From Octopus bimaculoides (taxonomy: Eukaryota), in assembly GCF_001194135.2 (NCBI RefSeq), contig NC_068993.1, positions 54,352,346 through 54,416,345 of the forward strand: a stretch of 64,000 nucleotides of DNA. Direction: 5' to 3'. Numbering within the stretch: position 1 is the first letter of the stretch; each line of letters opens with the position of its first letter. The position numbers and the translations under genes are program-made. Of the stretch, positions 8,688 through 59,743 are shown piece after piece. The notes below the pieces were generated by a model that was not told the origin of the DNA, did no database searches, and saw only the letters and a program-made list of their open reading frames with translations.

Positions 8688-8718
<31 letters not shown>

Positions 8719-9813: not shown

Positions 9814-10085
9814 GCGAGGGCATGTGGCCAAGTGATTAGGGTGTTGCACCCACGATTGCAAGATCATGGTTTCAGTTCCTAGTCTGGCGGTGTGTTGTCT
9901 TCTTGGGCATTGCTCCAGTCCGCTCAGCTGTAAATCGTTAACCCTGCGATGAACTGGTGTTCCATTCGGGGTAAATGTTGGCCTGTCAGCCTAACCAGCA
10001 GGTTGGCTTCATTTGAAAACTACAACAATGTGAGGAAGCACATTGTGACCAGTGGTGAATGACAGTATTCGATAGTCTGATTGAT
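9814..10085 (+). mobile_element. tRNA-derived SINE (second family), degraded
   Basis: tRNA-like head GGCCAAGTGATTAGGGTGTTGCAC. Confidence 0.55.
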
Positions 10086-10194
10086 TCAGTGATAGACACA
10101 TATACATACATATAAACATACACACATATGTAATTTGTGAAGGGGAATTACAGTGTTATAGTCTTCCAATAATAGAGAAATGTCCAATACTCAC

Positions 10195-10293
10195 TGAACC
10201 AGCAATATCTACATCAGCATGTTTACCAAGCAAAGCCTTGACGATATCAACGTGACCTCCTTTCACAGCATGAATCAATATTGTATCACTCGC
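10195..10293 (-). CDS. KIDINS220: KIDINS220 exon, ankyrin repeat 8 ([33 protein letters not shown])
   Basis: 99 bp, CAG/GTGAGT. Confidence 0.95.
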
Positions 10294-10511
10294 CTGGACA
10301 GAAAGAAAAAAAAAAAGAAAAAATATAAACAACAATATCAGACAATTCCTTAACCTTTTCGTTACCAACCCGGCTGAAACCGGCTCTGGTTCTGCAGTAC
10401 AAATGTCTTGTTTTCAAGTTCTAAATTAAAATCTTTCACCAAATCTTAGTCACAATTTATGCTCCTAACACCAGCTTAATGATAACTAAGTTATTTTACT
10501 AAATTCTGGTT

Positions 10512-10680
10512 GGGCAGAAGACAGGGGCTGGCTAGGCAGAAGACAGTGGTTGGCTAGGTAGAAGACAGGGGCTGGCTAGGTAGAAGACAGGGGCTGGCTA
10601 GGTAGAAGACAGTGGTTGGCTAGGTAGAAGACAGGGGCTGGCTAGGTAGAAGACAGGGGCTGGCTAGGCAGAAGACTGCA
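10512..10680. repeat. 22-bp minisatellite GGTAGAAGACAGGGGCTGGCTA, about 7.5 copies
   Basis: Direct reading of the sequence. Confidence 0.95.
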
Positions 10681-10855
10681 CTAGGCTCCACTGTCTGTTT
10701 TGGCAGGGTTTTTATGGTTGGCTGCCCTTCCTAAAACCAATATATAGTTATCTACAATTATATTTTCTAGTAGTTATGGACATCAAGAAACAACAACAAA
10801 AAACTTCACAAAATATTAGAAATATTAAGAGTAAAATAGTGAAAATGTGACTAAC

Positions 10856-10954
10856 TTTATCAACAATGTTAACATAAGCTCCTTTGGCTAGAAGAGCCTG
10901 TGAGATTTCAGTGTAACCTTCTTTGGCACTGATAGCAAGGGCTGTGAAACCATC
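10856..10954 (-). CDS. KIDINS220: KIDINS220 exon, ankyrin repeat 7 (DGFTALAISAKEGYTEISQALLAKGAYVNIVDK)
   Basis: 99 bp, TAG/GTTAGT. Confidence 0.93.
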
Positions 10955-11189
10955 CTAAAGGAAACAAAGCAGACAAATAGCATTGGTTATTCGTGTAATT
11001 TGTGGAAATTAATGAAAAATAATAAAACAAAAAACTTAACAACAAAACTCAACTGCATGTTTCAAAACATGAACAAAATTGTTAACTCATTTCTGTTTAT
11101 AGAAAACAAACAAGAAAAATATATATCATTTCTGACCCTCACAACATCTTAAAGATATAAACCAAGATTTTTCTGACAATTAAATATTC

Positions 11190-11375
11190 TTTCTACTTTT
11201 GGGGTTGATGTAATTGACTGCAGTACTTGATTGGTACTTATTTTATTTTATTGGCCTCGAAAGGGTGAAAGGCAAAGTTGACAAGAGTGGCATTTGAACT
11301 CAGAAACGTACAGAGCTGGAAGAAATGCTACAAAGCAATTCGTCTGGAACGGTAATGATTCTGCCAGCTTGCTAC
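11190..11375 (-). mobile_element. Nin-domain-type SINE, degraded
   Basis: Reverse-complement similarity to 45443-45655. Confidence 0.6.
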
Positions 11376-12332
11376 CTTTATAACATTAAATGTTGATTGG
11401 ACTGTGTGTGGAGATGCTGACTATACACAATGTATAGATGCAGGCTGGATAGATAGACATGCTGTCTACCCTGATGTTGATTTGACAAATAGACACAGTG
11501 TGTAGTAGTTGATTGGATAGAAAGACACAGTGTGTAGATGCAGGAGTGTCTGTGGAGAGAGTATGTTGAAGTTGCATGGATAGATATGGTACACACACGT
11601 TGATTGGATCGGCATTCACAATGTGTAAATGTTGACTGTATTGAGTAGATATTGACTTCATATTTTCAGGAGCAGCAAGTTTTAGGATTTGAACCCAGCT
11701 TTTTTTCTAAATTTGCTATCATGAGAGAATCACAACTGAGGCATGCATTTATCACATGAACTACAATTTATCTGAGAATCACAATTTTCAGGTGCATGTT
11801 CTATTTATCAACTGATCAGCTTGCAGCAGATCACACCACAAAGTTAGAACATAAGTGAATGTCCTTAAGATTTGTGTTCTTTTTTCTAGTTAAGCAGTTT
11901 AGTACTAAATAACCTTTGCAGAGTGTTGAGGGTAACTCAAGGATTCACATGCCTCACTTCTTATTAATGCAGATCAGGTAAATAACTAAAATAGGCCAAC
12001 AGCATGAATTATGAAGAATAAGTTAAGTTACTGTGCATTAAAAAGAAAGTTCTTAATAAATGGAAATTTCTTAGTTGGAGAAAGAAAGCAAAAACCTAGT
12101 GGAGATTGTTATCTCCCTTGTGTCTCATAGAAAAAGGGAGATAATTTTAAGACATGAATATTTTCTCAATCAATTTACACGAAGAGGAGAAAACAAATTG
12201 GTTCAATTTATTTGTTCAAAGATCAGATGAAAAGGAGAAAATCTGATCCTTGTCATGCAGGTAAGGGACAACCAAGGACATGTTTCAGTTTATTATTTTT
12301 AAAATGTTTAAAAAAAAAAAATCTTTCCTTAC

Positions 12333-12431
12333 TTTATCAACTGCATTAACATGGGGGTCTCTCTCAATTAATTTGTGCACAATTTCTGTGTAACCACCAC
12401 GAGTAGCAACAAGTAAGGCTGTCCATGAATT
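12333..12431 (-). CDS. KIDINS220: KIDINS220 exon, ankyrin repeat 6 ([33 protein letters not shown])
   Basis: 99 bp, TAG/GTAAGG, just left of the N-gap starting at 12471. Confidence 0.93.
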
Positions 12432-13259
12432 CTACAATAAAAATGACAAACGTTAGGAAAATGATAATGANNNNNNNNNNNNNNNNNNNNNNNNNNNNNN
12501 NNNNNNNNNNNNNNNNNNNNNNNNNNNNNNNNNNNNNNNNNNNNNNNNNNNNNNNNNNNNNNNNNNNNNNNNNNNNNNNNNNNNNNNNNNNNNNNNNNNN
12601 NNNNNNNNNNNNNNNNNNNNNNNNNNNNNNNNNNNNNNNNNNNNNNNNNNNNNNNNNNNNNNNNNNNNNNNNNNNNNNNNNNNNNNNNNNNNNNNNNNNN
12701 NNNNNNNNNNNNNNNNNNNNNNNNNNNNNNNNNNNNNNNNNNNNNNNNNNNNNNNNNNNNNNNNNNNNNNNNNNNNNNNNNNNNNNNNNNNNNNNNNNNN
12801 NNNNNNNNNNNNNNNNNNNNNNNNNNNNNNNNNNNNNNNNNNNNNNNNNNNNNNNNNNNNNNNNNNNNNNNNNNNNNNNNNNNNNNNNNNNNNNNNNNNN
12901 NNNNNNNNNNNNNNNNNNNNNNNNNNNNNNNNNNNNNNNNNNNNNNNNNNNNNNNNNNNNNNNNNNNNNNNNNNNNNNNNNNNNNNNNNNNNNNNNNNNN
13001 NNNNNNNNNNNNNNNNNNNNNNNNNNNNNNNNNNNNNNNNNNNNNNNNNNNNNNNNNNNNNNNNNNNNNNNNNNNNNNNNNNNNNNNNNNGTTCCAAATA
13101 TTTTTCTTAAATCATCTTCAAACCTGACTGGAGGTCTCCCAAGTGGTCTCTTCAGTTCAACAAATGCATGGGTCCACTGATTATCTGTGGACCTTGTGAC
13201 ATAACTGGCCTAACATAGCTTTGTGTGGTGGTATTCTGCGACAACATCCTTCACTCCAG

Positions 13260-13304
<45 letters not shown>

Positions 13305-13580
13305 TCATCATCATCATCGTTTAGCATCTGCCTTCCATGCTGGCATGGGTGGGGCAGTTTGATAGGAGCCGGCTAGGCAGAAGCTTGCACCAGATTTCTG
13401 TGACTGTTTTGGCAGGATGTTTACAACTGGATACCCTTCTAGTACCAACCACCCAGCAGAATATACACACACACACACTCGCCCTGCATTTTATCCATCT
13501 ATCTATTAAATTAATCAACCAAGCAACGCATCCTTAAGCTGAATATATACAATGTCAACAAATGCCAGACACTGACTTAC

Positions 13581-13679
13581 CATTCCTGAGATATCCACAT
13601 CAGCTCCGTGGTCCAATAATTTTTCAACAATGTTCAGATAACCTTTACGAGCTCCCCACACCAATGGTGTTGTTCCATA
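13581..13679 (-). CDS. KIDINS220: KIDINS220 exon, ankyrin repeat 5 (YGTTPLVWGARKGYLNIVEKLLDHGADVDISGM)
   Basis: 99 bp, CAG/GTAAGT; YGTTPLVW.ARKG motif. Confidence 0.95.
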
Positions 13680-14239
13680 CTGGAAAGACAATGAAAGCAG
13701 TGAAGCAGCAGAGAAATAACAACAAGCAAACAACATACGGCAATCATATACAGAAGATATACAAAAGATATGCAGAAGATATGCAGAAGATATACAAAAG
13801 ATATGCAGAAGATATATAGGTTTGGGGATACAAACAGGAAAATAGAACTCAAAACACAAGCATCTTGTATCTTTTATCTTTTACTTGTTCCAGTCATTAT
13901 ACTGTGGCCATGCTAGAGCACTGCCTTGAAGAAGTTTCCGTCAAATGAATTGAATCAAGTACTTGTTTTTTTTTAAAGCCTGGTACTTATTCTAGTGGTC
14001 ACTTTTGCTGAACCACTAAGTTACAGGGACATAAACACAAACATAAAGACACACACATACATACATATATATGACAGGCTTCTTTCAGTTTCCACCTACC
14101 GAATCTATTCACAAGGCTTTGGAGAGTCTGAGGCTATAGTAGAAGACACCTATCCAAGGTGCTTTATTTTATCGTCATTGCCTTACTGTCCTAAATAATA
14201 AAAAAAACCAACAACAAAGTGAGTAAAGACAGAAATTAC

Positions 14240-17553: not shown

Positions 17554-17980
17554 NNNNNNNNNNNNNNNNNNNNNNNNNNNNNNNNNNNNNNNNNNNNNNN
17601 NNNNNNNNNNNNNNNNNNNNNNNNNNNNNNNNNNNNNNNNNNNNNNNNNNNNNNNNNNNNNNNNNNNNNNNNNNNNNNNNNNNNNNNNNNNNNNNNNNNN
17701 NNNNNNNACGGCCACGCTCAAAATGGTATATATATAATATATAAATACTTAGCAGAAACAACATAGTGACTCAAGGGTTGAGAGATTCATGTGTTAGCAT
17801 TTATCAAGCAAAACTCTCAGCCCTTGAGTCACCCTGTTACTTCTGCTAAGTATTAATATATATATACGTATACATTCATGTTTTAAGTTCTATTTTTCCT
17901 GTTTGCATCACCAAACCTATACACACACACACACACACACAACTGTAGTGGAAAGAAAGTATGTTAGGGAAAGATCTTAC

Positions 17981-20405: not shown

Positions 20406-21679
20406 CATAGGCATGCAGGAAGTAAACAGACATCTTTAATTTTCAAAATCTTTTATTTAATACACAAAGTGAAGAATTGAAATGTAATCGATAGGTAGGA
20501 CTACATACTTTTGTATTTAGTTGACATTCCCTTTGCAGTTTTTAATTCAGAAACTCTTTTTGGCATTGAACAGATGAGCTTTGTGATTGTCTCTTGTGGA
20601 ATTTCTGCCCACTTTTCACGCAACAATCGAAATAATTCATCTTTAGATTTAGGTTTCTGTCAAGCTTTTCACATAGCTCTATCTAGTATGCTCCAAAGAC
20701 TTTCAATTGGGTTCATGTCAGGAGATTGGCTCAGCCAAGGAAGCTTTTTGATCCCATTTTCAGTCAGCCATTGTTGATTCCTTTCACTGTGTGGCATGGA
20801 GCCCCATCTTCCATGAATAAAAACTCATTTTTCGTTATTTTATCATATAAATACATCAGAAGTAGTCCTTGCTTAAGTATTTCGATGTATTTTTCAGAGT
20901 TTATGGTTCCAACACATTCGATCAGCTCAGAACGATCATTGCTGGTGACAGCTCCTCATACCATTACAGAGATGCTGCCATGTTTCACAGTTGGTTGGAG
21001 TCGTTTCAAATCAAATTCTTGATTGGGAAGCCTCCAGACCCAAACACGTCTACTGTCTGAAAATAATGCAAACCTGGATTCATCTGAGAAAATCACTCTA
21101 TCCCAAAATGAACTGGATTTTTCAGACATCTCCTTAGCCCATTTCTTTCTTTTCATGATATTAATTGGTTGAAGGAGAGGTTTTCTTCTAGCTGTTTGTC
21201 CATAATACCCAAGCTTATGCAGATATGTAACGCACGTTCTTGGACTAACTGCTAGCTTTTTTGCAATGTCAGAAGCCTTCGAATGGGGTTTGTTTTCCAC
21301 AATTCTCTTCAAACAGTGAAGCTTCCTTTCTGAGGGTCCAGGTTGGCTGGGACGAGAATCTGTTGATTCTTTTCCTTGGTTTTTGAATTGCACTATAATT
21401 CTATTAACAGTTGCAAGAGGAATTTGAAGACTTTTGGCAATATTTCGCTGGCTAAGGCCAGCCTCAGATTGCCCAGCAATATGACTTCTTTGAAAATCTG
21501 ACAGTTCTGCTGAACTTTTTGCGTGTGGCATGGTTACTCTTCGCAAATGTTTAATATAATGGCATCTGGAATGAAAAAGAATAATTACATTGTAAATTCT
21601 ACACCCCTGAAAACATTAAGATGCTTAGATCAGAAATTTTGAAAATTAAAGGTGTCTATTTACTTTCTGCATGTCTGTG
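20406..21679 (-). mobile_element. Tc1-family (DD34E) DNA transposon, full length, transposase inactivated
   Basis: About 45-bp imperfect TIRs (CAYAGRCATGCAGRAAGTAAA...) flanked by TA. Transposase from about 21531 with paired-type [21 protein letters not shown] and SPDMNPIE; TGG>TGA stop at 20956-20958 and a later frameshift. Confidence 0.92.
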
Positions 21680-31378: not shown

Positions 31379-31724
31379 NNNNNNNNNNNNNNNNNNNNNN
31401 NNNNNNNNNNNNNNNNNNNNNNNNNNNNNNNNNNNNNNNNNNNNNNNNNNNNNNNNNNNNNNGTTTATATGCATTATGTATGTCTTGATATTGTCACCCG
31501 TTTCCCTCCCTTTTCACTCCCCAGATATTTAAGTGAGTTAAAATGCGTGCGACCTATCTGATTTATGAAGAGGACAAATTGTTGGAGTGAAGATGGCTAC
31601 AGCTTCAGTTATAAAAATTGTGAAATTGTGTAAGATTTTGGGAGGTAATCTCTAAAATGATGTTCGAATTGGTACTCAAATTCCAAAAACCAAAATAAAA
31701 TCAGCTCTGGCAAGCATAATTGTG

Positions 31725-36393: not shown

Positions 36394-37787
36394 AGGCGGC
36401 GGACTAGCAGAAACGTTAGCACACCAGTCGAACTGCTTCGCGGTATAACGGCTCTGTGAATTATTGTGAATACTATTGTGTTACTTTGTGAAAACTGTCG
36501 GTGAATAATTGTGATTTTTGTGGAATTATTACGGTTGCATTTCACGCGAGCTGCTGCATTTTTCCCAGCTATGGCAAGTGGTAGTGTCTCCAGTATGGAG
36601 AGCTACGCCAAAGCCACTGCGGTGAGGAAGCCAGCGCTGCTAGAAACCAAGTTAATCAAGTTGGATATGGAGGAGGTGACCAGAAGCAGGAATTTGATAG
36701 AAGTTGAGGGAGACTCGTACAAATTGTGTCCCCCAAAAGAGACTAAAGAAAATAAAATTCTGAGGACAGTAGTGTATCGTACACAGGCTGTCGAAACTGG
36801 TAAAATTGAAATGGTGACGGAAGAGGAAATCGAGGAGTGCCTGGGTGAAATTGTCAATGAAGCCACGTACATCAATAGAGGAAGAAAGTTCTGTACGGTT
36901 GAGGTGAGGTTCGCCACTGTAGAAGAGGCAACCAAGCCTGCGACCAACATTTTAAGAAGTGAGAAAATAGCATTGCTACCAAGTTATAGAGGAAGAAGAA
37001 GTGTGAAAATACGAATTCCCAGAGTTACACCAGAAATTAAACCAGAGTNNNNNNNNNNNNNNNNNNNNNNNNNNNNNNNNNNNNNNNNNNNNNNNNAGTA
37101 CGAGAATTGCGAGCAGATGGAGAGAAAAGTCGAGAGGTTAAAAGAAATAATAAGAGTGAAAATGCCAGAGAAATGTGCTGAAAAATGCATTTTGATACGT
37201 GAGGAAAGATGCTTCGGGTGCATAAAAGAACTTGGTGAAAATATAATAACGAAACGGATATGGTTGGTGGAGACACCACCCCCTAGAACTGATTATTTGC
37301 AGTTGTTAAGGACGGACGTAACAATGATTAATGGAAGAAAGGTAACGCGAGTGTTTGGATTTTTTGAGTTACAAAACCGTTAAAATGTTTACATGACGTT
37401 GAACGTAAAAGTGAAAAACTGGATAAATGTAACCACCCGACTTCGGGGATCGAGTGGATATTGCGCCTCATTTTTTTTACATTCTTGCATATAGTCATTT
37501 TATTTTAATTACCCCGATTTTATGTTTGCGTTTTCTACTGTCTTTATGTTTTGTGATGTCTTAAAAATTCTTTGTATAGCCCTTTATGGGTAATAAAGAA
37601 ATCGGCATTTCGTCTGCCGTTACGTTCTGAGTTCAAATTCCGCCGAGGTCGACTTTGCTTTTCATCCTATCGAGGTGGAATGAAATAAGTACCAGTTACG
37701 CACTGGAGTCGATGTAATCGACTTAATTCCGTTGTCTACCTTTGTTTGTCCTCTTTATGTTTAGCCCCTTGTGGGCAATAAAGAGAC
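36394..37787 (+). mobile_element. Nin-domain-type tRNA SINE split by the insertion
   Basis: Perfect 14-bp TSD AAGATGTTTAATTA at 36380-36393 and 37788-37801; core GTCGACTTTGC..CATCC..GAGG. Confidence 0.85.
36447..37602 (+). mobile_element. Non-autonomous LINE derivative carrying an ORF1-like frame, inserted in a SINE
   Basis: ORF 36571-37383 (contains a 48-N gap) with RRM-like TVEVRFATVEEA; interrupts a SINE at cggtat/cggcat; ends in an AATAAAGAAAT tail. Confidence 0.6.
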
Positions 37788-38994
37788 AAGATGTTTAATT
37801 ATTTCAGTTTTCGTGTTTATTAATCTTTTCAGTTTTGTATGATTTGTTATAAAAATATTATCAGATTCAATACAAGGTTTCATCGTGTCACTTTTTTTGT
37901 TTTGTTTTATTAAGGGTTTAACAATTTTTTTTTTTTAGTTGAGGGAGATAACCAAAAGTACCAATATGTCTCAGCAAACGTGGGGAGATAACCCGATATT
38001 TTAATGTGGGTGCGATAACCAAAAGGTGCCCCGGTGGAGTGCCAGATATATGGTAAAATATGGTCCAGGTGGTCAGGGCTTAATTTGGTCTCGTCTTGAA
38101 AGTTTATAGATTTCAGTGTCTTGAACTGCAAACGTGTTGTCTTTAAAATATAACGAATCCTACAGAAACGTCACTTCTTGTTGATGTTGGAATGGTTCTT
38201 AAGTTTCAAGGAGATAAACCCATGCGTCGTGACTTTTCTTTGATATCTGTTATCGTTTACTTGTTTCAGTTATTGGGCTACGGCCAGGCTGGGGCACCGC
38301 TCGAAGATTCTTTTAGAAAATTTTAATTTTAGCTGATCAGATCAATCCCAGTGCTTTGTTTTTCTTTTGAAAAGTTTGGTACTTATTCTATCGGTCTGTT
38401 TTGCCGAACTACTGCGTTACGGCAACGTAAACGAACCAACACGGTCGCCAAGCGGTGGCGGGGGTGGGGGGGGAACAAAACACAGACACATATACTCTCC
38501 CTACCTTTCTCTCTCTCNNNNNNNNNNNNNNNNNNNNNNNNNNNNNNNNNNNNNNNNNNNNNNNNNNNNNNNNNNNNNNNNNNNNNNNNNNNNNNNNNNN
38601 NNNNNNNNNNNNNNNNNNNNNNNNNNNNNNNNNNNNNNNNNNNNNNNNNNNNNNNNNNNNNNNNNNNNNNNNNNNNNNNNNNNNNNNNNNNNNNNNNNNN
38701 NNNNNNNNNNNNNNTTGTTTCAGTTATTGGGCTACGGCCAGGCTGGGGCACCGCTCGAAGATTCTTTTAGAAAATTTTAATTTTAGCTGATCAGATCAAT
38801 CCCAGTGCTTTGTTTTTCTTTTGAAAAGTTTGGTACTTATTCTATCGGTCTGTTTTGCCGAACTACTGCGTTACGGCAACGTAAACGAACCAACACGGTC
38901 GCCAAGCGGTGGCGGGGGTGGGGGGGGAACAAAACACAGACACATATACTCTCCCTACCTTTCTCTCTCTCCCCACACTCTCCCTTTCTCTAAC

Positions 38995-40260
38995 ACACGC
39001 TCTTTCGTTGGTGTCTGTGGTTATGCTAAGACCGAAAGTTTTCATCATTTGGATAATGTCCTTCATAAACCGATCTTGTGCTGGTCCATTGGTATTTGCG
39101 GTTAAAGCTAGGGCATCATCTTTGTAAATGGCAAAATATACGTCAGGAAAAGTCTTGCCCAACGTATCGAGTAGGAATAGTCCAATGTGATCGCATATGC
39201 CTGCTCCATCATATGACCCCCATGCTCACATCGAAAGCACCCTCTGTGTCAATAGTCTTGACCCACTCTACGTTCTCACTGGAGAGTAATGTCTTTCTAG
39301 CATGGAAGATTATGTCCTTATCTTGCGCACTAATTTCTATAAATTTGCTTGTGAAGGTGAGGGCTTTATCTAGCAGTTCCTTAGAGATAGAGGCTTGAAA
39401 ATCGACAATATCGAATTGCGTAAATCTCGCTTTATTCTTATTCTTAATAGTTTTAAACCAGTCAACGACTTCTATACTATTGGACCATTGTACTAACCTA
39501 GTAGCATTCCTGACTTGCGCATTGATTTTTCTTAAAATTTCTTTACTAATAATACCAATTTCTGACTAAGGTTAATAAGCCTAAATTTAGGATTAGATAG
39601 GAAGTTCTTTTTACAGTCCTTGATAGTTATAAAGGCCTCTTTTTTTGGAAGGACCTCTATTTTTAAAATCTAATTTTAGTCTGGCGGCGATAATGCTAGC
39701 TTCTTTATTAATTTCGTTATAAATTTGTGGCCTAGCTTTGGTGTAATTCTTGATGATGCTGTTGTGTAGGAGTCGTGAATATGTGCTGTTTTCTACAAGG
39801 TATAATTTCTTCGTTTTATCAGAAGAAATTTTTTTTTTAACTCTTTATGTATTTGATATCTTTTTTTCAGTTGTTGTTGAAAAGTGTTAAAGGACTTACG
39901 AAATTTTATTTTGTTCCTGAGCTTCAGTAGGTCCGCTTCGAAGTCTTCCAAGCCTTTGATATTTGGAGGGAATTTCTTTGATTTAATTCCATAGAATATG
40001 TTCTCTGTAGTGTCCTCTTCCATGTTGTAAAAGAAAGCTTTCCATCTCATATGCTTAATAAGATCTGTAATTTTCTCCAAAAGTTTCTTAGAGTATAGTT
40101 CCCTGGATGGTATAGGTATGCTTTTCATAGAATAATCGATATTGAATTCTCCTGCGGGGTAGAGTCCTCAACCAATTTATAGCGATTTTCCAAAATAAAC
40201 TGTATTAGCTTTTACGGAAAAATAGCGGTGTACGGAAGGTAACTTATTAATAGTAATAGT
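38995..40260 (-). mobile_element. Penelope-like element reverse transcriptase remnant (frameshifted, 3' part missing)
   Basis: IDYSMKSIPIPS, RWKAFF, AFITIKD, FRLIN, FTQFDIVDF, FDVSMGSYDGA and IYKDDAL are Penelope-type RT motifs. Confidence 0.88.
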
Positions 40261-42143: not shown

Positions 42144-43277
42144 TCAAAAGGATAAGAGGGAAATATTTGAGTAGCACTTTATAGGAGAATCGTTAGATCC
42201 TCTATCGGTAAATTCTTTTGCCTGACAATCACTGGAATTGCAGAGAGGATTTCTACCTGATCGTACTGATTCTGAAGAGCTTTCTAATTCATAGTTTTCA
42301 GTTAGAATGCGTCCTTTACGATTCTTTTGAGTCATTGCTATGGAGTGGTTCTGCTTGGACGAAAAGCCATCTTTATGTTTGCCTCTTTCTTTTAGATTGG
42401 CATTGAAATAAGCACAGGCATTGGTATACCATTCTTTCTTCGAATTCCATGTCATAAAGGAGGTGATTTCTTCAGCAACTGTCTCAACACGCCATAATTC
42501 TAGGAGCCGCCGATACAACTCTCCATTTCCATGCTTCTGGAACGTCTTTTCCATACTTTCATCAATTTTCTTGTATTTCGTTGCACTTTTTTGCACCTTA
42601 TGAAGAAGCATCAAAGTCTCTGCTTTGAAGCAGAGGGGTATAAGATACTCCCCTAGTTCTGCTAGTGCTGATATATCGCCACAAGGAGCATTACTGGCTG
42701 AAAGAATATTCAAAACAGTAGCTGCTTGGTTGCTCCAGTTCATATTTATTTTGGCCAGTTGAAAGTTTTTTAAAGCGCGCCAGAATGAGTGTTTTCGTTT
42801 CGTGAGGTTAGCAATACGTTCCTCCTGCAGCATATCGTACACCTTACGGGCATCCACCCTGAGATTTTTGTCCTCCAACGATTCATTGGTGTTTGAAGAT
42901 TCACAAGGTAACTGCGACAAATTCGAGGACGTTACTGGCGACTGGTTCATGATGGAATTAGTGTCATTGAATGTTGGTGAACTGGTGTGAGGTAGAACTA
43001 TGCCGACCATTGAGGGACAATCATTGTCATCACTTGCGTGTGAACGCATTTCTTGTTGTTGTAAGATATTTGCTTCACCGTTGCTGTCCCGACAGAGGTG
43101 AAGCTGCAGTGGAGTACACCTCTCCACTGCAGCTGTCAAGTTTCGATCGTGGTTCATGCTCATTGCTGCCGAGAAAATATCGCAGCTCTCTTCACTGTCG
43201 GTGAAATTTGAGGAGCTCGTTGATGGCGAGACAGTAAAAATCATGCTGTCATGGTTTTCCATCTCAGGAATCTCCAT
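42144..43277 (-). CDS. Intronless uncharacterised protein A (377 aa from the ATG at 43277), paralog of 49397-50914
   Basis: Uninterrupted ORF over 1.1 kb in AT-rich DNA; ungapped similarity to ORF B (81/137 identical); no transposon motifs recognised. The track start at 43328 is GTG. Confidence 0.78.
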   Translation of the reverse strand: MEIPEMENHDSMIFTVSPSTSSSNFTDSEESCDIFSAAMSMNHDRNLTAAVERCTPLQLHLCRDSNGEANILQQQEMRSHASDDNDCPSMVGIVLPHTSSPTFNDTNSIMNQSPVTSSNLSQLPCESSNTNESLEDKNLRVDARKVYDMLQEERIANLTKRKHSFWRALKNFQLAKINMNWSNQAATVLNILSASNAPCGDISALAELGEYLIPLCFKAETLMLLHKVQKSATKYKKIDESMEKTFQKHGNGELYRRLLELWRVETVAEEITSFMTWNSKKEWYTNACAYFNANLKERGKHKDGFSSKQNHSIAMTQKNRKGRILTENYELESSSESVRSGRNPLCNSSDCQAKEFTDRGSNDSPIKCYSNISLLSF

Positions 43278-43366
43278 CTTTGTCGAGTAGTCGCAATGTA
43301 AGGGATATAAACGTTGGATAAAAATCACACGCAGTTCAATCCTTTCCCTACATCACTTCCTTTCTG

Positions 43367-43378
43367 TATGACGTCATA
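43367..43378. promoter_or_regulatory. CRE palindrome TGACGTCA (extended TATGACGTCATA) about 90 bp upstream of ORF A
   Basis: Exact 12-bp palindrome; ETS-like CACTTCC just left of it. Function is inferred. Confidence 0.45.
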
Positions 43379-44116
43379 AGCAAACTAATAACTAACTCCT
43401 CCTCCTCTCTCACTTCATCATGCAATACCAACATCTCAGCAGACGACAGCAACACAGTCTGTGAGTTCTAGCGGATATTTATTCTTCCTTTTTCAGCCTT
43501 CTTTTTATTCCTCGTCGTTTATCCTCTCCTAGGAAAACAGTCACCTCTTCATGATGTTTCATGTTTTAATGTCCTTATATGTGTGTGTGTATGTGTGCGT
43601 GCGTGTGTGTGTGTGCGTGTGTGTGTGTGTGTGTTTGTGTGTGTGCGTGTGCGTGTAGGTGATGGTAGTGGAGTTGCTATATTGGGGACGGCAGCAGTGG
43701 CGGTGGTGGTATAATGCTGGTAGATTGTGTATTGGCGTAGTGAGTTGGTATAGTAATGGTGGCCATACGATGGTCTAATGAAATTCGTATGCAGTGCAGT
43801 GGAGGTACATATGCAAACGAAAATACTAAGTGGGGAAAAAGATCTACATGGACACGTGAAAAACATTGTTTAAAAAAAAAAATTAATTTGCAAGCTTCAA
43901 CTTCTTACATTCCATGTCACTGCATGGATAATCACTTCCAAACACCCAGAAACACAAGCAAATCCCCAGAGCACAATCGCAACAACATCTGCTTGCCCAC
44001 TCACCCTAAACAAGCCTAAGGAACACATACGAAAACTGACGTGTACTGAGGGGTAAACTTCTTACGATAAGGGCAGAAGAATAACACGTTTTGTTTAGAA
44101 CGAGGACTTCCACTAG

Positions 44117-44260
44117 AGGCGCTTGGCTTAGTGGTTAGGGAGTTGTGCTTTCGATTCCGGGACCGGGCGACGCGTTGTGCTTTTTTTTTTAAAGCAAAAC
44201 ACTTCATTTCATGTTACTCCAGTCCACTGAGCTGGCAAAAATGAGTAATCTTGCGACGGC
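44117..44260 (+). mobile_element. tRNA-derived SINE head (second family)
   Basis: GGCGCTTGGCTTAGTGGTTAGGG..TTCGATTCC. Confidence 0.7.
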
Positions 44261-44454
44261 GGGGATTTATACGTCAGGGAAGCCGGTCCTTATGAGTCGA
44301 CATGACTCTAGAAGATGACTATTACTCTACCTTTTACTGAGTCCTTCTTACCCATCTCTACAGTGGCCACAACATGAACCTATGGGTCACACAGATTGTA
44401 ACCCAGCAACTCGGATGCACACGACATTCCACCGGTTATAACGGTGTGAGTTCC

Positions 44455-44745
44455 AGTTGATTCGCTCAACGGAACAGCCAGCTCGTGAAATTATCGTGCA
44501 ACTGGCTGAGAATTCCACAGACACGCGTACACTAAACCTAGTTCTCAGGGAGATTCAGCGTGACACAGAATGTGACAAGGCTGTCTCCTTTGAATTACAA
44601 GTATAACACATTTTTGCCGGTTTAGTGGACTGGAGCAACGTGAAATAAATTGTCTTGCTCAAGAACACATCGCGCTACCGGGAATCGAACATTCGACTAC
44701 GATCGAGAGCCGAATATCCTAACCATTAAGCCAAACGCCTGCACA
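44455..44745 (-). mobile_element. tRNA-derived SINE (second family)
   Basis: Similar to 35746-36048. Confidence 0.75.
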
Positions 44746-45442
44746 CACAGTCAATATACCAATAAATGCACCATCACATAACCAAACTGACATACTACTC
44801 CTGATGCTTTACGAACACACACCCTACCTTCACTGCACCGCATAAGACTTTCATTAGGCCACCATGACGAAACCAACTCACTACGCCAATACACAATTTA
44901 CCAGCATTGTACCACCACTACTGCCATAGCAGCAACTCTCACCACCATCACCTACACGCCAAGACATTAGCACCATCGTTGTAGTAAGACACTACCACCG
45001 TGACTATTATACCAGCACACCACACTACTGTTACCCTTACATCAACACACACACACACCACTCATCACTGTACTAACGCAATATAATTTATGTTAAGACC
45101 AGGCGATCTCTCTCGTTTTCAGGCTGTGGATTGTTTCTTTGCAGGAAATATTCTCGACTCGGTTCCGGACACCATTTGTAACTGTTTTCTCTTCTGTTAC
45201 CCAAACACTTCCAAATGCGGACTTAACTGTCGCTTGTGCGCTTCTATATGGCACATAAGATTGTGGTTATTTCTCCGCCAGGTAGAAAATAGGAAATTGC
45301 TTGTATAACAAGTATTCACAAACGTCAGAAACTGTAAAGGAGTGCAAAGAAAAATGCGTGGATCCAACGGAACTTGAACACAAGGTGAGCTCCTTCTGAA
45401 CAGAATATATACTTCCGGCCATGACAATTTCATCTTTAATAG

Positions 45443-45655
45443 AGGCAGTGAGCTGGCAGAAACGTTAGCACGCCGGGCGAAATGCTTAGCGGTATTTCGT
45501 CTATCTTTACGTTCTGAGTTCAAATTCCGCCGAGGTCGACTTTGCCTTTTTATCCTTTCGGCATCGATAAATTAAGTACCAGTCGCTTACTGAGGTTGAT
45601 CTAATCGACTGGCCCGCTCCCCCCCCCCCCAAATTTCGGGCCTTGTACCTAGAGT
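45443..45655 (+). mobile_element. Nin-domain-type tRNA SINE (well preserved)
   Basis: GAGCTGGCAGAAACGTTAGC...GAGTTCAAATTCC...GTCGACTTTGCC. Confidence 0.8.
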
Positions 45656-47447
45656 AGAAAAGAATATAGGCAGTGTATATAGGACATGATATCTGCTATG
45701 TTAAACTCGTTGTAAGACAATAGATGATTTAGGGAAGATTAGTTTTCTATTTCTAGCATGTCAAGCGACCACGTAGAGGCTCTTTGGTTGAACGTATTTA
45801 AGTATGTTTAACATTTGTCTTCGTTGAACTCCAAACAATGAAATACTCGCACCAAACGGACTATCGAGGGTGCATTTATATGGTTTCTCGTTTAACTAGC
45901 CAGAAATAGCAGCCAGATCATATCGTACCCTCTCAGAGGATGGAATGATACATTTGATAATCTAGTTCTAGAGAAACTGTAGAGAAATCACGGTAGAGTA
46001 GTGGCTGAAACGTTTCGATCGTAAGTATGTCTACTCGGTCGTGTCTGACTTGGCGCCAAACAACAGAAACAATTACAACCATTTTGGAGTCTGATTTAAA
46101 ACTGAAGGGGGAAGAAATGCGCAAGGATGCCGAGGGAGAGAGATAGGGCTTAGATTTGACTATTGCAATGTTAGAAAGAGGCACAGAGAATGGTATCAAC
46201 AAAGGTCTGCGAATGTTGTTGAGAGAAAAAAAATAGGGTCAACTCCAGTTTCAGATCCGGACAAAATTTTTTTTTAAATAGCGTAATATGTGTAAAACTT
46301 TTTTTTGTTTTGGTGTGAAACCGGAGTGTAACCGAAAATACAATACTATGGGAGGACATGGTGCTATGATTGATACGTGGAAGGTGTCTCATCCAGAAAT
46401 AAGGATGCAGAGCACGGACAGTAATATGTCGTGATTCACGAACAGGAATATGTCAACCCACAGACAATAACATTTTAGAAGGGTATAAAGTCGACTGAAT
46501 CTATCATAAAGCTTGCCTAGAACTAATTTTATTGGCCCAAAGCGAAATATCAAAACTTTTCCCTGTCGGGATTTGAACTAAGAACGTAACCACACTCCAG
46601 ATTTTTATAATATACCATACACATAACTGCGGGAACGAAATTTGCTTGGAGGGTGCAAACCCAGATTTTTAGGAGGAAGTTCAAAGCGTTTACATTGCCC
46701 CTCCCCCAACCTCGCTACAAATTTCCCGACCATGACCATAAAGTATTTTAACCCTACTCTTTTGATTTTTTTACTATCAATCGCCTCTTTTATAGTAATT
46801 TTTCATTCTTTTTAACCTCTGATGATATTTATAGGTAAATTATATTCAGCTTTATTCATGCAAACGCAATATGAATCGTTAGTTTTTTTTAAAAATATTT
46901 CCAATAAAAACAAATGTCGTGGCGATGAACGGGACGTTATACAACGGCATCAGAAATTTACATACAAATTAAGAAACAATCATAAATGCATATAAAGACA
47001 ACACATAATAAATGTTTTAAATACTTTCTTTAAAAATGAAGACAAAAAGCAACAACAGTAGCAGCCGCAACAATAAAAATATAAAAGTGTTGAGTGAAGA
47101 AAGTTCCTCTTTATTGAAACCATCTGTAATAGCAGGCAGACTCCAGTAAAGTGTAAATATACATCTAGACTATAATTAATTGCTATTTTTTAACCAGGCA
47201 CATAGGAAGGGCTATCGTCTATGTATGGCTCTACCACAGAATATCACTGGTACTTGTATTAAGGCACCGTCATAGGTTAACTTCATCGCGAGATGAAAGT
47301 TTTTCTTTTATTCTTGTTTAAAAAAACATAAAAGGGATTTAAATTGCAAATATTTTCTCTGTTTTAGAGAAACTTCCGTCAGATTTGTCCGTTTCTTTGG
47401 GAACGCTGTGTGTGTGTGTGTATATGTATGTTGGATTAGATATGTAC

Positions 47448-47480
<33 letters not shown>

Positions 47481-47876
47481 CATGTACGTACGAATGTATA
47501 TATGCATGCGTGTGTGTGTCTGTGTGTGTATCTATGTCCGTGCGCGTACGTGTGTGTGTCAGTAATAATATCAATAAATCTATGTATCGTATACCATGGG
47601 TTTAACAGAGATCCTCAGTAAATGTAAATTATAGGGATACAAATAGCATGGAGTGAATTTATATAGTCTCACACACACATGCACACGCATTGTATATGTA
47701 CATATATGCATATATATTATATATATATATAGTTGGGAAAAGATTAGAGGTCTATACAAATAATTTTTTTTATAAATGAAAGATGGAGGTGGAAATAGCA
47801 CAGAAGTAAATCTAAAACATTTCAATTTAAGAAGGAATTTAATAAAAAGGATTTTTAAAATTATATATATAAAAAA

Positions 47877-47919
47877 AATTTTACCGGTTTCGATAATGAA
47901 TTTCATCTTATCAAATATC
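47877..47919 (-). ncRNA. Hammerhead-like motif with U3-A8 core (left arm of foldback)
   Basis: GAUAU-UUGAUAA-GAUGA loop UUAUC-GAA-ACCGGU-A; palindromic stem III ACCGGU. Confidence 0.5.
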
Positions 47920-48014
47920 AGTAAAAATTTATAAAAAATTTAAGTAAAAACGTGTTTGTGACCCCGAGACAGAAGTTAAATTGTTTTTACTTTAAATTTT
48001 TATAAATTTTTACT

Positions 48015-48057
48015 GATATTTGATAAGATGAGATTCATCATCGAAACTGGTAATATT
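48015..48057 (+). ncRNA. Hammerhead-like motif with compensatory U3-A8 core (right arm of foldback)
   Basis: GAUAU-UUGAUAA-GAUGA loop UCAUC-GAA-ACUGGU-A-AUAUU. Confidence 0.5.
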
Positions 48058-48364
48058 TTCTTTATATAATTTTTAAAAATAGCTTTTATTTGATTCCTTC
48101 TTAAATTGAAATGTCTTAGATTTACTTGTGTCATTTCCACCTCCATCTTATAAGATGTATGTACATATATNNNNNNNNNNNNNNNNNNNNNNNNNNNNNN
48201 NNNNNNNNNNNNNNNNNNNNNNNNNNNNNNNNNNNNNNNNNNNNNNNNNNNNNNNNNNNNNNNNNNNNNNNNNNNNNNNNNNNNNNNNNNNNNNNNNNNN
48301 NNNNNNNNNNNNATACTACACACACACATACATATATATACGTACATACATATATATATATACA

Positions 48365-48397
<33 letters not shown>

Positions 48398-48472
48398 CAC
48401 ATTTATACATACATATATTTATGAATACATATATATGCATATATTTGCATGCATTATATATGTATAGATTAC

Positions 48473-48504
<32 letters not shown>

Positions 48505-49396
48505 ATATATGTTCATATGTGTATATTTCTGTTATATGCATATGTATCTATGTTTCGTAACGTGTCTATGTTAATGTATATACAGGTATATGTGTATATC
48601 ACATGCTATGTACTAGTATGTGTATATATATGCATGTTTAGGTTACGCACTATAAAGTATATAGTGCTTAAATGTTACGTAATGTGTATATACACGTGCA
48701 TACGTAATGTGTCGTCATACATGTATATACATTCTATCTAAGGTATATTCATATATAACAGCTTTTGCAGTTTTATGCACTACCTAGTATGGGTGAGTAT
48801 GGGTAACCTCTCTCCAAATATGGTTGATTCGCAGAGATTCTTGGAAAGAAGGGCACCACTGGGGGGTAATTCCTGAAAATATTCTGTTTGTTTGGTACAA
48901 ATTTGTATGTATGCTTTTGCCCTGTGTAAAAATATATGTGTATGTGTACGTGTGTGTGTGTTTGCAAGGGGGGGATAGAAGAGATAGAGGAGATTGACCG
49001 CACGCACATGCTTGTGATTAAGGGTGTGGTTCACAAATATCAGAAACATTCCACTGTGGAAAGTCTAATAAAACCACTATTTTCCATTCAACCTGTTTTT
49101 TTAAAATAAATATTTATGTATTCTTTTTTGATTTTTACTTTTCTCTTTTTAAATTTTTTTTTTTTTGTTAATGACTTTTCTTTTTTAAAAACACATTCTT
49201 CGTACCGAAACCAGAAGGCGAGATTAATCCTGAAGTAAGAAGAGAAGAAAGCTGGGTCAGTCAGGTATCAGATGTATCGTCCATCGGGAATGTCTGGGCA
49301 GACGATTTGATTTCACCACTTTGCTCGGAATAATTCACCAAGTCTTGTGGGAACCGAATTTGTAATATTTTGATTTTGGTTAAATTCGTTGTGGAA

Positions 49397-50914
49397 TCAC
49401 TTTAAGAATCTCCTAGCTCCACGACGCATATCAGCACAGTGTATCTCTCGCATGGCACTATAGGAATGGTTTGGATAATTATCATTCGAGAAATTCTTTT
49501 TCCTCTGGCAGTGTACGGTTCTGATGTGGCGTGTGGTTCGCCTGTAGTTCCTTTCAGTTTTTGGAGTCTTCGACTCCAGCGAATTCACGTGTATATAATT
49601 GCATTTTGCATTAGATTCTTTAGATTTTCTTTTGGTGACAATAACTGAGTCACTCCTAAATTTATAATTCCTTCCTTGATATTTCGTCTCTCTTGGATAA
49701 ACAGTTTGGCGAAAAGACCTACGTTTGGTTCGATTTGTAATTTGCTCAGGAAGTCTGGAGCGTTTTGATTGATCACTATTTATTTTCAGTTGCCAATTGA
49801 CATTCTTTCTGGAATCTCTTGGATCATTCTTGAAGCAGGACCAGACGTTATTACTATACCATTCTTCTTTTGAATTCCACGTCAAAAACGATGTAATTTC
49901 CTCAGCGTCTGTCCCAACACGCCATAACTCAATGAGGCGTCTACAAACTTCCCCGCTACTGTAAAATTTGAAAAGATTCTGCATGATTTCGTCAATTTGT
50001 TTATACTTGGAAATGTTTTTTTGAACTTTTTGCAGCAGAATCACTGTTTCCATTTTGAAACAGAGTGTCGTCAAACATTCTGCTAATTCTTCAATGGCTG
50101 ATTTACTCCCTTGAGACGTTTCAGTTGTAGAGATCATATACACTAGAGGTGGATTCACATTGCTCCAATTCATATTTAGTTCAGCTAAGTGAAAATTTTT
50201 TACTGCGTGCCAGAATGAATATTTCCTTTTCGTCAGGTTTGCCAAATGTTCAGTTTGAAGCATATCACTCAGAGACTGCACATGATAATGGATGTCATCC
50301 TCATTTGCTGAAGATATAGGAGAGGGATGCAATAAAAATGTCATTTCTGCTTCGTCAGTCTCTTCAGCCATTTCATCACTAGATATTTGTGAACCAGTCG
50401 ACGGCGAAACAGTAAATATCATACTTTGGTGGCTTTCGTTTTCATTATTAATATATTCCACATCGTTTTTAGTAGTTTCTCTTGTCTGATTAGCTTCGTT
50501 CAATGTGTCTTCTGCATCTTCTTGCGTTTCTTTTTCAAACTCTGGTAAAACCGGTAATGACAGTTCTTCGATGTTGTAATCATTATATTGGTTCGGCTCT
50601 TCAGAATAGTTCTCGTTATTCATATTCAAATCTTTATTCGAGGCGTGAATCGCTTTCGGCTCCATTATATCTCTTACTTCAGTCAGCTGATCTGCATCAA
50701 TAATTGTCTTCATTTCCATCAGTAGATTCTGCATCTTATCTCCGTCCAACTCGGCAATTTCTGTAAACATTGCATTGGAGAAAAGCTCCTCTCTCAGTTG
50801 TGCCATCATGACTTTGAGACCTTTATCGATTTGTTGGCTTGTATTCCGAAGCATTTTGTACATTTCACTCATATCTGACCGTGTTGGTCCAGATTTGAAG
50901 TGCAAGTGAGACAT
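49397..50914 (-). CDS. Intronless uncharacterised protein B (505 aa): acidic N-terminus, shared helical domain, basic C-terminus
   Basis: 1518-bp ORF; ATG in an A-rich context (AAAATAATG); paralogous to 42144-43277. Confidence 0.8.
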   Translation of the reverse strand: MSHLHFKSGPTRSDMSEMYKMLRNTSQQIDKGLKVMMAQLREELFSNAMFTEIAELDGDKMQNLLMEMKTIIDADQLTEVRDIMEPKAIHASNKDLNMNNENYSEEPNQYNDYNIEELSLPVLPEFEKETQEDAEDTLNEANQTRETTKNDVEYINNENESHQSMIFTVSPSTGSQISSDEMAEETDEAEMTFLLHPSPISSANEDDIHYHVQSLSDMLQTEHLANLTKRKYSFWHAVKNFHLAELNMNWSNVNPPLVYMISTTETSQGSKSAIEELAECLTTLCFKMETVILLQKVQKNISKYKQIDEIMQNLFKFYSSGEVCRRLIELWRVGTDAEEITSFLTWNSKEEWYSNNVWSCFKNDPRDSRKNVNWQLKINSDQSKRSRLPEQITNRTKRRSFRQTVYPRETKYQGRNYKFRSDSVIVTKRKSKESNAKCNYIHVNSLESKTPKTERNYRRTTRHIRTVHCQRKKNFSNDNYPNHSYSAMREIHCADMRRGARRFLK

Positions 50915-53777: not shown

Positions 53778-54629
53778 ATGTATGTGTATCTGTGTACATG
53801 TTTGTGCATGTGCAGGCACACGATAGATACATACCCAGTAACACATACATATATATGAACACATAAGTATATATATATATATATATATATGTAGATTGAG
53901 ATAGAAAGTAAGAAAAGAGTATATTTATGAGAGACAAAAAATGGGATATATANNNNNNNNNNNNNNNNNNNNNNNNNNNNNNNNNNNNNNNNNNNNNNNN
54001 NNNNNNNNNNNNNNNNNNNNNNNNNNNNNNNNNNNNNNNNNNNNNNNNNNNNNNNNNNNNNNNNNNNNNNNNNNNNNNNNNNNNNNNNNNNNNNNNNNNN
54101 NNNNNNNNNNNNNNNNNNNNNNNNNNNNNNNNNNNNNNNNNNNNNNNNNNNNNNNNNNNNNNNNNNNNNNNNNNNNNNNNNNNNNNNNNNNNNNNNNNNN
54201 NNNNNNNNNNNNNNNNNNNNNNNNNNNNNNNNNNNNNNNNNNNNNNNNNNNNNNNNNNNNNNNNNNNNNNNNNNNNNNNNNNNNNNNNNNNNNNNNNNNN
54301 NNNNNNNNNNNNNNNNNNNNNNNNNNNNNNNNNNNNNNNNNNNNNNNNNNNNNNNNNNNNNNNNNNNNNNNNNNNNNNNNNNNNNNNNNNNNNNNNNNNN
54401 NNNNNNNNNNNNNNNNNNNNNNNNNNNNNNNNNNNNNNNNNNNNNNNNNNNNNNNNNNNNNNNNNNNNNNNNNNNNNNNNNNNNNNNNNNNNNNNNNNNN
54501 NNNNNNNNNNNNNNNNNNNNNNNNNNNNNNNNNNNNNNNNNNNNNNNNNNNNNNNNNNNAAGAGAGCGAACAAAGAAAGAGAGAACGAGTGAAGTTGTGG
54601 TTAATTAAAGGAGAGGCAAAAACAATGCT

Positions 54630-57778: not shown

Positions 57779-58583
57779 TGTATATGTATGTACATATATA
57801 TATATATCGATGTGTATATTATATATGTGTATGCATAGATTTTATATACATATGCCTTACATATATATACAAATACATATGTACACACATATATGTATGT
57901 AAATATATATATATGTACAAAATATATGTATGTATATACGTATACACATAAACATGTATATATGTATCTGTTCTGTTGATATGGTTTGGTTATGAATATT
58001 GATGGAAAAAAATGAATAATACAATGTAATAAACTGTTACTATCAAAATAGAGAGTAAAGATAAATTTCACATCTATATATATATATATATATATATNNN
58101 NNNNNNNNNNNNNNNNNNNNNNNNNNNNNNNNNNNNNNNNNNNNNNNNNNNNNNNNNNNNNNNNNNNNNNNNNNNNNNNNNNNNNNNNNNNNNNNNNNNN
58201 NNNNNNNNNNNNNNNNNNNNNNNNNNNNNNNNNNNNNNNNNNNNNNNNNNNNNNNNNNNNNNNNNNNNNNNNNNNNNNNNNNNNNNNNNNNNNNNNNNNN
58301 NNNNNNNNNNNNNNNNNNNNNNNNNNNNNNNNNNNNNNNNNNNNNNNNNNNNNNNNNNNNNNNNNNNNNNNNNNNNNNNNNNNNNNNNNNNNNNNNNNNN
58401 NNNNNNNNNNNNNNNNNNNNNNNNNNNNNNNNNNNNNNNNNNNNNNNNNNNNNNNNNNNNNNNNNNNNNNNNNNNNNNNNNNNNNNNNNNNNNNNNNNNN
58501 NNNNNNNNNNNNNNNNNNNNNNNNNNNNNNNNNNNNNNNNNNNNNNNNNNNNNNNNNNNNNNNNNNNNNNNNNNNNNNNNNNN

Positions 58584-59100: not shown

Positions 59101-59743
59101 NNNNNNNNNNNNNNNNNNNNNNNNNNNNNNNNNNNNNNNNNNNNNNNNNNNNNNNNNNNNNNNNNNNNNNNNNNNNNNNNNNNNNNNNNNNNNNNNNNNN
59201 NNNNNNNNNNNNNNNNNNNNNNNNNNNNNNNNNNNNNNNNNNNNNNNNNNNNNNNNNNNNNNNNNNNNNNNNNNNNNNNNNNNNNNNNNNNNNNNNNNNN
59301 NNNNNNNNNNNNNNNNNNNNNNNNNNNNNNNNNNAAAAAAAAAAAAAAAAAAAAGAATGGATTAAAAGACAACCAAAAAGAAAAAAAAAGGGTAAATAAA
59401 TAAATAAAAATAAGATGAATGAATAACAATTGGTTCCTCTCTCTTTTTGTTTGTAATAATTCTTGTTGTTGTTGGTTGTTTTCCGTGTTCTTATTGTTCT
59501 TCTAGTTTCATAATGCTTTGGACATATTGTATTATCTGGGTTGTGTTATCTTCTTTCCTTTCATTATGTCTTGTTCTTTTGTTTCCATTCCATCCATCCA
59601 TCCCCCAGAGTATATCATACAAATAAGAGTTTTGGCTTGTAATAATAATAATTATTAATTTAATTAATTAATATTTGCTTCAGACCAGAAAGGGGATTGA
59701 AATGTTAGCGTGACAATGATTTGGTAAGTATTCTTATATATGG

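Follow-up and report, generated by a model that had tools for sequence, protein, structure and literature searches.

The domestication of structural proteins of transposable elements is well known for long terminal repeat (LTR) elements, as in the case of Arc and PEG10, and for the long interspersed nuclear element (LINE) LINE-1, as in the case of L1TD1. Namely, Arc, the PEG10/RTL family and Fv1 are gag-derived genes that go back to the capsid folds of LTR retrotransposons or retroviruses, and L1TD1 is a host gene of mammals that arose from LINE-1 ORF1p, a protein composed of a coiled coil, an RNA recognition motif (RRM) and a C-terminal domain. Here, we describe two neighbouring genes, called A and B, on the minus strand of a 64,000-nucleotide stretch of the Octopus bimaculoides genome (contig NC_068993.1). 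This whole stretch is referred to as the window, and all coordinates are given on it unless an L-numbered locus is named. It is our belief, held with a probability of about 0.72, that A and B are paralogues in tandem that belong to an old, small cephalopod host gene family derived from the first open reading frame (ORF1) of a Penelope-like element (PLE), and we rate them as a case in which transposon genes were domesticated from a class of donors new in this role, the PLEs. No report of host genes derived from PLE ORF1 was found in the literature searched.

Coleoid genomes contain an ancient set of repeats, of which PLEs are a part (PMC8967140, PMC13282606). Their ORF1 is barely described and essentially uncharacterised: it is mentioned in the legend to Figure 1 of PMC8557442, according to which it is separable by a frameshift, and for one Neptune ORF1 a 2025 paper states 'no similarity in any database' (PMC12602865). 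The family has no Pfam model. The ORF1 of Neptune/Nematis-type PLEs resembles A and B in carrying a homologous helical domain of about 150 amino acids, with the motifs RK..FW, W, ID..M and LW....EE.S..W..K.W, as well as in its layout of acidic arm, domain and basic tail and in its similar length. Unlike PLEs, A and B are without a downstream ORF for reverse transcriptase (RT) and GIY-YIG endonuclease or a ribozyme, are not multi-copy, and occupy fixed syntenic positions under purifying selection; moreover, A, B and a third paralogue, C, are without the PILPRKF...GEPE block. As far as analogy allows one to judge, L1TD1 is the closest analogue in kind, since it is likewise a host gene that arose from the non-enzymatic ORF1 of a non-LTR retrotransposon and lost ORF2, and, as with L1TD1, one would expect an RNA-binding, self-associating protein. 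It differs from A and B in that there is no relationship in sequence or fold, the domain of A and B being all-helical and their donor a PLE rather than a LINE. Arc, PEG10/RTL and Fv1 are similar in being structural retroelement proteins kept as single-exon host genes, sometimes in small paralogous families, but a capsid-like fold is absent from A and B, and neither the PDB nor the viral structure libraries yielded a match.

Gene A is a single-exon coding sequence (CDS) of 377 amino acids at 42144..43277 (-). The list of ORFs gives it as 42144-43328 from a GTG start, and translation almost certainly begins at the ATG at 43277 instead, giving 377 amino acids; the database protein P0093 is identical to it over this length, the exact A protein being present in UniRef/MetaClust. 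Gene B is a single-exon CDS of 505 amino acids at 49397..50914 (-), the same length as its syntenic gene in O. vulgaris. A preliminary description, made from the letters of this DNA alone, had noted two long minus-strand ORFs with a single exon each that share a block of 137 amino acids, and all of this holds exactly: 42426-42836 in A and 49856-50266 in B align without gaps at 81/137 identical residues in translation and at 271/411 identical bases, with the differences distributed as 42/23/75 over codon positions 1/2/3. Over the whole ORFs, BLASTP finds 93/198 identical residues (E 8e-55), and no third copy was found in the window by tblastn. The shared block lies within a PLE-ORF1-like helical domain, which spans residues 136-287 of A (42417..42872, -; profile match to P0004 136-287) and residues 205-356 of B (49847..50302, -; profile match to P0001 205-356, along with the helices predicted by AlphaFold2, AF2).

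The preliminary description had also recognised no Pfam motif in these proteins, and indeed Pfam gives no family at threshold for A or B (best 12-15 bits, under the cut-off), and a PDB sequence search returned 0 matches. A word-indexed protein search matched three clusters, all of them cephalopod, gave a single match with a 31-sequence alignment as query, and with P0005 returned only P0005 and P0006. The word index fails to reach this family, and only an exhaustive profile search did so, run with four cephalopod domain sequences against 1.8 billion protein representatives. It returned 91 clusters at E<=1e-3, mostly with full-domain coverage. The top eight are cephalopod paralogues, and about 80 other clusters remain, mostly of 250-460 amino acids with the whole domain aligned (a few are shorter or longer, and two are spurious). 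The non-cephalopod ORF1-like matches lie at E 1e-10 to 1e-3 with full coverage and have in common the motifs W..L..RK.AFW, Y..W, ID.EM and LW..E...EE.S..W..K.W. In the reverse direction, a profile of 45 non-cephalopod sequences only matches A at 77.6 bits (E 7e-24) and B at 73.6 bits, and nothing else among the 273 ORFs of the window. Finally, hhalign relates the cephalopod and the non-cephalopod profiles at 99.7% probability (E 1.7e-25) over 151 columns.

What these other proteins are can be read from their surroundings. The genomic context was readable for four non-cephalopod proteins, and in 4/4 cases the gene lies directly upstream of, or overlaps, a PLE ORF, the spacing to ORF2 being 48-315 nt where the two do not overlap. 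The ORF2 features in these contexts are RVT_1, HTH_animal and GIY-YIG, along with the motifs GLKFTPTP and DKGG. In particular, the next ORF carries RVT_1, HTH_animal and GIY-YIG in the case of P0010 (L011) and P0024 (L014); the ORF downstream of P0013 (L012) is 47-59% identical to the ORF2s of L011 and L014; and a frame that overlaps the stop codon of P0012 (L013) encodes the typical ORF2 start INLSSRDL..E..LLKLGLKFTPTP. The P0010 cluster has 26 near-identical members across many Mb-sized contigs, which means that it is multi-copy. The ORF2s carry GLKF, DKGG and, upstream of GIY-YIG, CX3CxxC, a motif that marks Neptune/Nematis-type PLEs (Craig et al. 2021, PMC8557442). On L011, L012, L013 and L014, the start of ORF2, INLS.R.L..E..L.KGLKFTPTP, lies in another frame at or over the ORF1 stop, which fits the frameshift arrangement given in PMC8557442. 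L011 also carries, next to its element at 8001-11503, a second, inverted and partial PLE copy at 11953-13809.

The similarity extends to the layout of the proteins. Charge and isoelectric point (pI) by segment, computed for five PLE ORF1s and for A, B, C and the distant counterparts of the first two, A' and B', follow one order in both groups, namely an acidic N-terminal arm (pI ~4), the domain, and a basic tail (pI 10-12). As judged by sequence comparison, the domain of A and B is homologous to PLE ORF1, and both whole-domain homology and the charge layout place the two genes in the PLE ORF1 sequence family. The preliminary description had taken the domain to be novel and lineage-restricted. 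Neither term can be kept for a domain that is homologous to PLE ORF1 and is found in about 80 other protein clusters, and a confident match to a transposon protein is precisely what that description had named as speaking against its own interpretation.

Homology to a transposon protein leaves the question of whether A and B are genes of the host. Selection was compared among three Octopus taxa, namely the window species, O. vulgaris and the SRR118693xx sample. Gene A shows 17-36 synonymous and 2-8 nonsynonymous differences, with a ratio of nonsynonymous to synonymous rates (dN/dS) of 0.03-0.06, and gene B shows 3-15 synonymous and 1-4 nonsynonymous differences, with a dN/dS of 0.05-0.08; five of the pairs have a binomial P between 4e-15 and 4e-06, and the remaining one, with just 4 differences, has a P of 0.05. 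In the immediate flanks of A and B, 4-9% of the aligned sites differ. The gene order B, A, KIDINS220, all on one strand, is the same in the window and in O. vulgaris, where B is annotated at the syntenic site as a one-exon gene of 505 amino acids (L015 1991-3508). Since purifying selection is thus seen on orthologous, syntenic copies, it acts at the level of the host. A side observation concerns B and its O. vulgaris orthologue at L015 1991-3508, which differ by 3 synonymous and 1 nonsynonymous changes (dS 0.010), with 4-5.6% divergence in the flanks of B and a dS of 0.076 for gene A. Constraint on synonymous sites (e.g. from RNA editing or RNA structure), gene conversion and chance are all possible reasons for this low value.

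The features expected of a PLE copy point the same way. A search with tblastn and with a profile of three PLE ORF2s found no RT or GIY-YIG in the window (best E 0.23), and RT or endonuclease similarity was likewise absent from 51 kb of the O. vulgaris locus (L015) and from the 10 kb around the C-type gene (L021); as a positive control, the same queries recovered both copies on L011. An Rfam scan of the window gave no family at the gathering score, hammerhead ribozymes included. Copy number is low, with two copies in the window and about four paralogue groups among Octopus proteins. In other words, A and B show none of the attributes of an element copy (a downstream RT/GIY-YIG, a ribozyme or pseudo-LTR, or multi-copy, dispersed and non-orthologous occurrence), and they do show what is expected of a domesticated gene, that is, a conserved locus at which the orthologues are subject to purifying selection. 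The earlier view that these are real genes is supported by their intact ORFs and by a dN/dS of 0.03-0.08 between syntenic orthologues, and the other findings that it had considered adverse, namely hundreds of copies, terminal repeats and a dN/dS near 1, did not materialise.

The family has several branches. A-type clusters are P0004 (O. vulgaris CAI9732184.1) and P0003, the latter being A'; B-type clusters are P0001 and P0002, the latter being B'; C-type clusters are P0005 (O. vulgaris CAI9721000.1, also with a member from Argonauta hians) and P0006; and the more distant D-type comprises P0071 (O. bimaculoides) and P0007. The C-type gene is single-exon as well and sits on a different chromosome, without any neighbouring gene up to 10 kb away, and its protein is identical at 390/420 positions (93%) between O. 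vulgaris and Argonauta hians. A neighbour-joining tree of the domain unites A, B and C with 100% bootstrap support, B with B' at 86%, and the C-types at 99%. Between A and B, dN is 0.26 and the maximum likelihood (ML) dS is about 2.7, i.e. saturated. The dS of A and B to their distant counterparts is saturated as well; for all of these comparisons NG86 and YN00 fail and ML gives 2.7 to 19, and only the statement that dS is much greater than dN is used, qualitatively. The distant sample ERR12374250 carries both the B-type P0002, which has the N-terminal region of B, and the A-type P0003, which has the start of A, MEIPE..DHDSMIFTVSPSTSSS.FTDS. The presence of both types in one distant sample means that the duplication predates that split, and, together with the saturated dS, agrees with the old duplication assumed from the start. 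As the C'-type protein comes from samples other than those of A' and B', the depth of the split is read from saturation alone.

Outside the domain, A and B share little. Nucleotide similarity of the two loci is limited to the domain (~67%) and to a 32-nt match over the motif SMIFTVSPST (L009 vs window). This motif, a second BLASTP match between A and B (14/18, E 7e-05), had been overlooked at first; it occupies residues 11-20 of A (43218..43247, -) and residues 164-173 of B (50396..50425, -), as located by BLASTP and alignment. A second shared segment is the N-terminal helical region of B, residues 12-81 (50672..50881, -), recognised from its AF2 helices and common to the C-type. A profile built from B and C over this region matches B-type and C-type proteins only, at E 1e-32 to 1e-45, and this region of about 70 residues has no counterpart in A and was undetected in PLE ORF1s. 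The flanks of the shared block are, therefore, not altogether unalignable, as had been stated: the motif is common to A and B, and the first 70 or so residues of B are common to the third paralogue. SMIFTVS and ST do not vary between the otherwise unalignable N-terminal arms of A, B, A' and B', a P/S swap occurs only in B', and the equivalent in the C-type is SIFPV; SMIFTVS(P/S)ST may be a short linear interaction motif. At the other end, the tail of A is mildly basic (42147..42416, -; pI 9.0), and that of B, residues 357-505 (49400..49846, -), is basic (pI 10.9, net charge +27) and predicted to be disordered, with a predicted local distance difference test score (pLDDT) below 50.

For full-length B, AF2 places the helices of the domain at residues 205-253, 271-318 and 322-361, and those of the N-terminal region at 12-44, 48-53 and 58-81. 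The mean pLDDT over blocks of 10 residues is 69-91 in the domain, except for the loop 251-270 (57, 50) and the block 341-350 (62), and 53-85 over residues 11-70 of the N-terminal region, dropping to 42 over 71-80. Outside helices 12-81 and the domain, B is predicted to be disordered. The model thus agrees with the helical domain between disordered arms that the preliminary description had proposed.

How might such a family have come about, and what might it do? The donor would be a Neptune/Nematis-like PLE, of which one ancestral copy would have lost the RT/GIY-YIG ORF and become a fixed single-exon host gene. Duplication would then have produced at least three lineages, with A and B in tandem beside KIDINS220 and C on another chromosome. 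The three-part layout of ORF1 would have been kept, with its acidic, disordered N-terminal arm, its helical domain of about 150 residues, and its basic, disordered C-terminal tail. In this scheme the helical domain may mediate self-association or bundle formation, the basic tail may bind RNA, and the host may use the proteins as chaperone-like factors that form ribonucleoproteins (RNPs). By analogy, self-association and RNA binding are probably what A and B do.

That said, a number of points weigh against this account. First, A' does not group with A in the neighbour-joining tree of the domain, and for this reason the orthology of A and A' is taken from the architecture of their N-termini. Second, the AF2 model of the domain is of moderate quality in the context of full-length B and poor when the domain is modelled by itself (pLDDT 45), and Foldseek searches of the PDB and BFVD (viral) libraries returned nothing at E<=1e-3, just generic bundles of long helices. 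Third, the Logan contigs that bear A and B run colinear with the genome and break off in repeats or microsatellites, and hence may be genomic reads. Fourth, a stop-riddled, retroelement-like relic lies at about 39212-40128 (-), 2 kb downstream of A on the same strand; its sequence reads …PKFRLINLSQ…FTQFDIVDFQASISKELLDKAL…FDVSMG…, and it has no Pfam match and reaches E 0.23 with the N-terminus of the PLE ORF2 profile. Fifth, the mechanism proposed above draws only on analogy and on the charge layout. Finally, we infer the transposon-to-host direction from distribution, that is, from the broad diversity of ORF1s as against host-like copies in cephalopods only, and from the intronless CDS.

Among the alternatives, the one that stands up best accepts the same origin and proposes another job. 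Namely, A and B could be dominant-negative restriction factors that co-assemble with the PLE ORF1 protein and block retrotransposition, in the manner of Fv1 and other gag-derived genes. Such a role would go well with the retained homology to what is presumably the assembly domain of the transposon, with the tandem duplication, and with the faster evolution of the A lineage. Genes engaged in an arms race, however, are not expected to show the very low dN/dS found among Octopus species, nor a C-type protein that is 93% identical between Octopus and Argonauta, and we consider this alternative unlikely. Given the strong purifying selection and this identity across distant octopods, a constitutive cellular role in RNA handling seems more likely than one in restriction.

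One could also turn the direction around and suppose that a PLE lineage acquired its ORF1 by capturing an ancestral host gene, the cephalopod genes being the original form. The capture of extra ORFs by retroelements is known from LTR elements of bdelloids (PMC5408684), and the N-terminal region of the B-type and C-type, undetected in PLE ORF1, would be in keeping with such a course. Several observations speak against it. There are about 80 divergent ORF1 clusters, as opposed to host-like copies in cephalopods only; the cephalopod clade is long-branched; the PILPRKF/GEPE block is conserved across ORF1s and the D-type and lost in A, B and C; and an intronless CDS fits an origin from a retroelement. 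All in all, capture from the host strikes us as rather improbable.

A third possibility is that A and B are ORF1 remnants of decayed PLEs, or non-autonomous elements consisting of ORF1 only, with frames that are open by chance or because of recent activity. Octopus genomes are rich in PLEs (PMC13282606, PMC8967140), and the single-exon CDS, the homology to a transposon protein and the relic downstream of A would all be natural under such a view. In O. vulgaris, however, the syntenic locus lacks the relic, whose match to PLE ORF2 is non-significant (E 0.23); we considered it as an RT remnant that would tie A to an element, rejected this on these grounds and for want of a Pfam match, and treat it as an unrelated insertion. 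What is more, A and B are in syntenic position in a second species, their orthologues show a dN/dS of 0.03-0.08 while the flanks diverge by 4-9%, the paralogue groups found in Octopus number only about four, and both frames are intact despite the saturated dS between A and B, which together make decayed or non-autonomous copies very improbable. Lastly, the notion put forward in the preliminary description, in which the genes would form an orphan or de novo family restricted to the cephalopod lineage and have a novel domain without relation to mobile elements, had in its favour the lack of any Pfam, PDB-sequence or fold match and the cephalopod-only results of word-indexed searches, and it retains hardly any probability now that the domain is tied to PLE ORF1 by three comparisons (exhaustive profile search, reciprocal profile and hhalign) and 4/4 readable contexts lie upstream of PLE ORF2.

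Turning to the locus itself, an assembly gap at 48171..48312 lies in intergenic microsatellite DNA, in neither gene. It is flanked by (TA)n/(CA)n, 1.1 kb downstream of the stop of B and 4.9 kb upstream of the start of A, so that no reading frame crosses it. The O. vulgaris chromosome is gap-free here and colinear with the window (L015 1235-4650 corresponds to 51672-48313, and L015 4752-5409 to 48108-47441), from which it follows that the two sides of the gap are continuous, in the same order and orientation. Overall, the alignment of the window to O. vulgaris chromosome OX597826.1 consists of successive blocks at 85-94% identity. The neighbour of the two genes is exon-rich and corresponds to KIDINS220, as seen from an exon for a KAP-family P-loop NTPase at 1253-2041 (-; Pfam E 1.3e-26). 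The O. vulgaris annotation of A (CAI9732184.1; L015 10001-41051) splices …SESVRS to an exon 31 kb off that adjoins KIDINS220. The unspliced O. vulgaris frame is fully conserved and ends at the same stop as A in the window; for this reason we prefer the single-exon model, and the O. vulgaris gene model is probably mis-joined.

Between A and KIDINS220 there is a DNA-transposon fragment, an ORF of 196 amino acids at 20956-21546 (-) with a helix-turn-helix of the Tc1/mariner type (HTH_Tnp_Tc3_2, E 2.4e-11). An ORF of 290 amino acids at 36511-37383 (+) has no Pfam match and is broken by the N gap at 37049-37096, which is one of eight further gaps (12471-13090, 17554-17707, 31379-31462, 37049-37096, 38518-38714, 53953-54559, 58098-58583 and 59101-59334). 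The region from 54 to 60 kb consists largely of very AT-rich microsatellite tracts (GC content down to 0.15-0.30); repeats and runs of N give rise to the long 'ORFs' in this part of the list, which are artefacts.

The Logan contigs were also considered as evidence of transcription and rejected as such, their ends being repeats or microsatellites, which leaves RNA and DNA origin not assignable. The first 29 nt of one of them (L001) have no match upstream of window position 51269, where the genome reads ...AATAG, and this could have been taken for an intron in the 5' untranslated region (5'UTR) of B. We rejected this reading too, as the 29 nt are a dispersed repeat present in the window and in L015. 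All B contigs start exactly k-1 bases into this repeat, and their 3' ends lie in microsatellites, which indicates a break in de Bruijn assembly and not a splice. The repeat, which starts with GCTAACGCTTCTGCCAGCTCG… and forms the first 29 nt of the B contigs, mimicked a spliced leader; it occurs at 3627-3646 and 45450-45469 of the window, at 8518-8545 and 13065-13092 of L015, and elsewhere.

As for the wider meaning of these results, we see an even chance that A and B are the first recognised host genes from PLE ORF1, members of a family (A, B, C and possibly D) that is ancient, spans the coleoids and duplicated before deep cephalopod splits, that their conservation offers a first handle on PLE ORF1 as a self-assembling, RNA-binding helical module, and that a cross-phylum ORF1 domain is missing from Pfam. 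The alignment built here defines the ORF1 domain family and could improve the annotation of transposons in invertebrates. For cephalopod biology, the gain is a small, old and strongly constrained gene family beside KIDINS220, and a conserved, selected host copy of this kind provides a stable protein for testing what the ORF1 module does.

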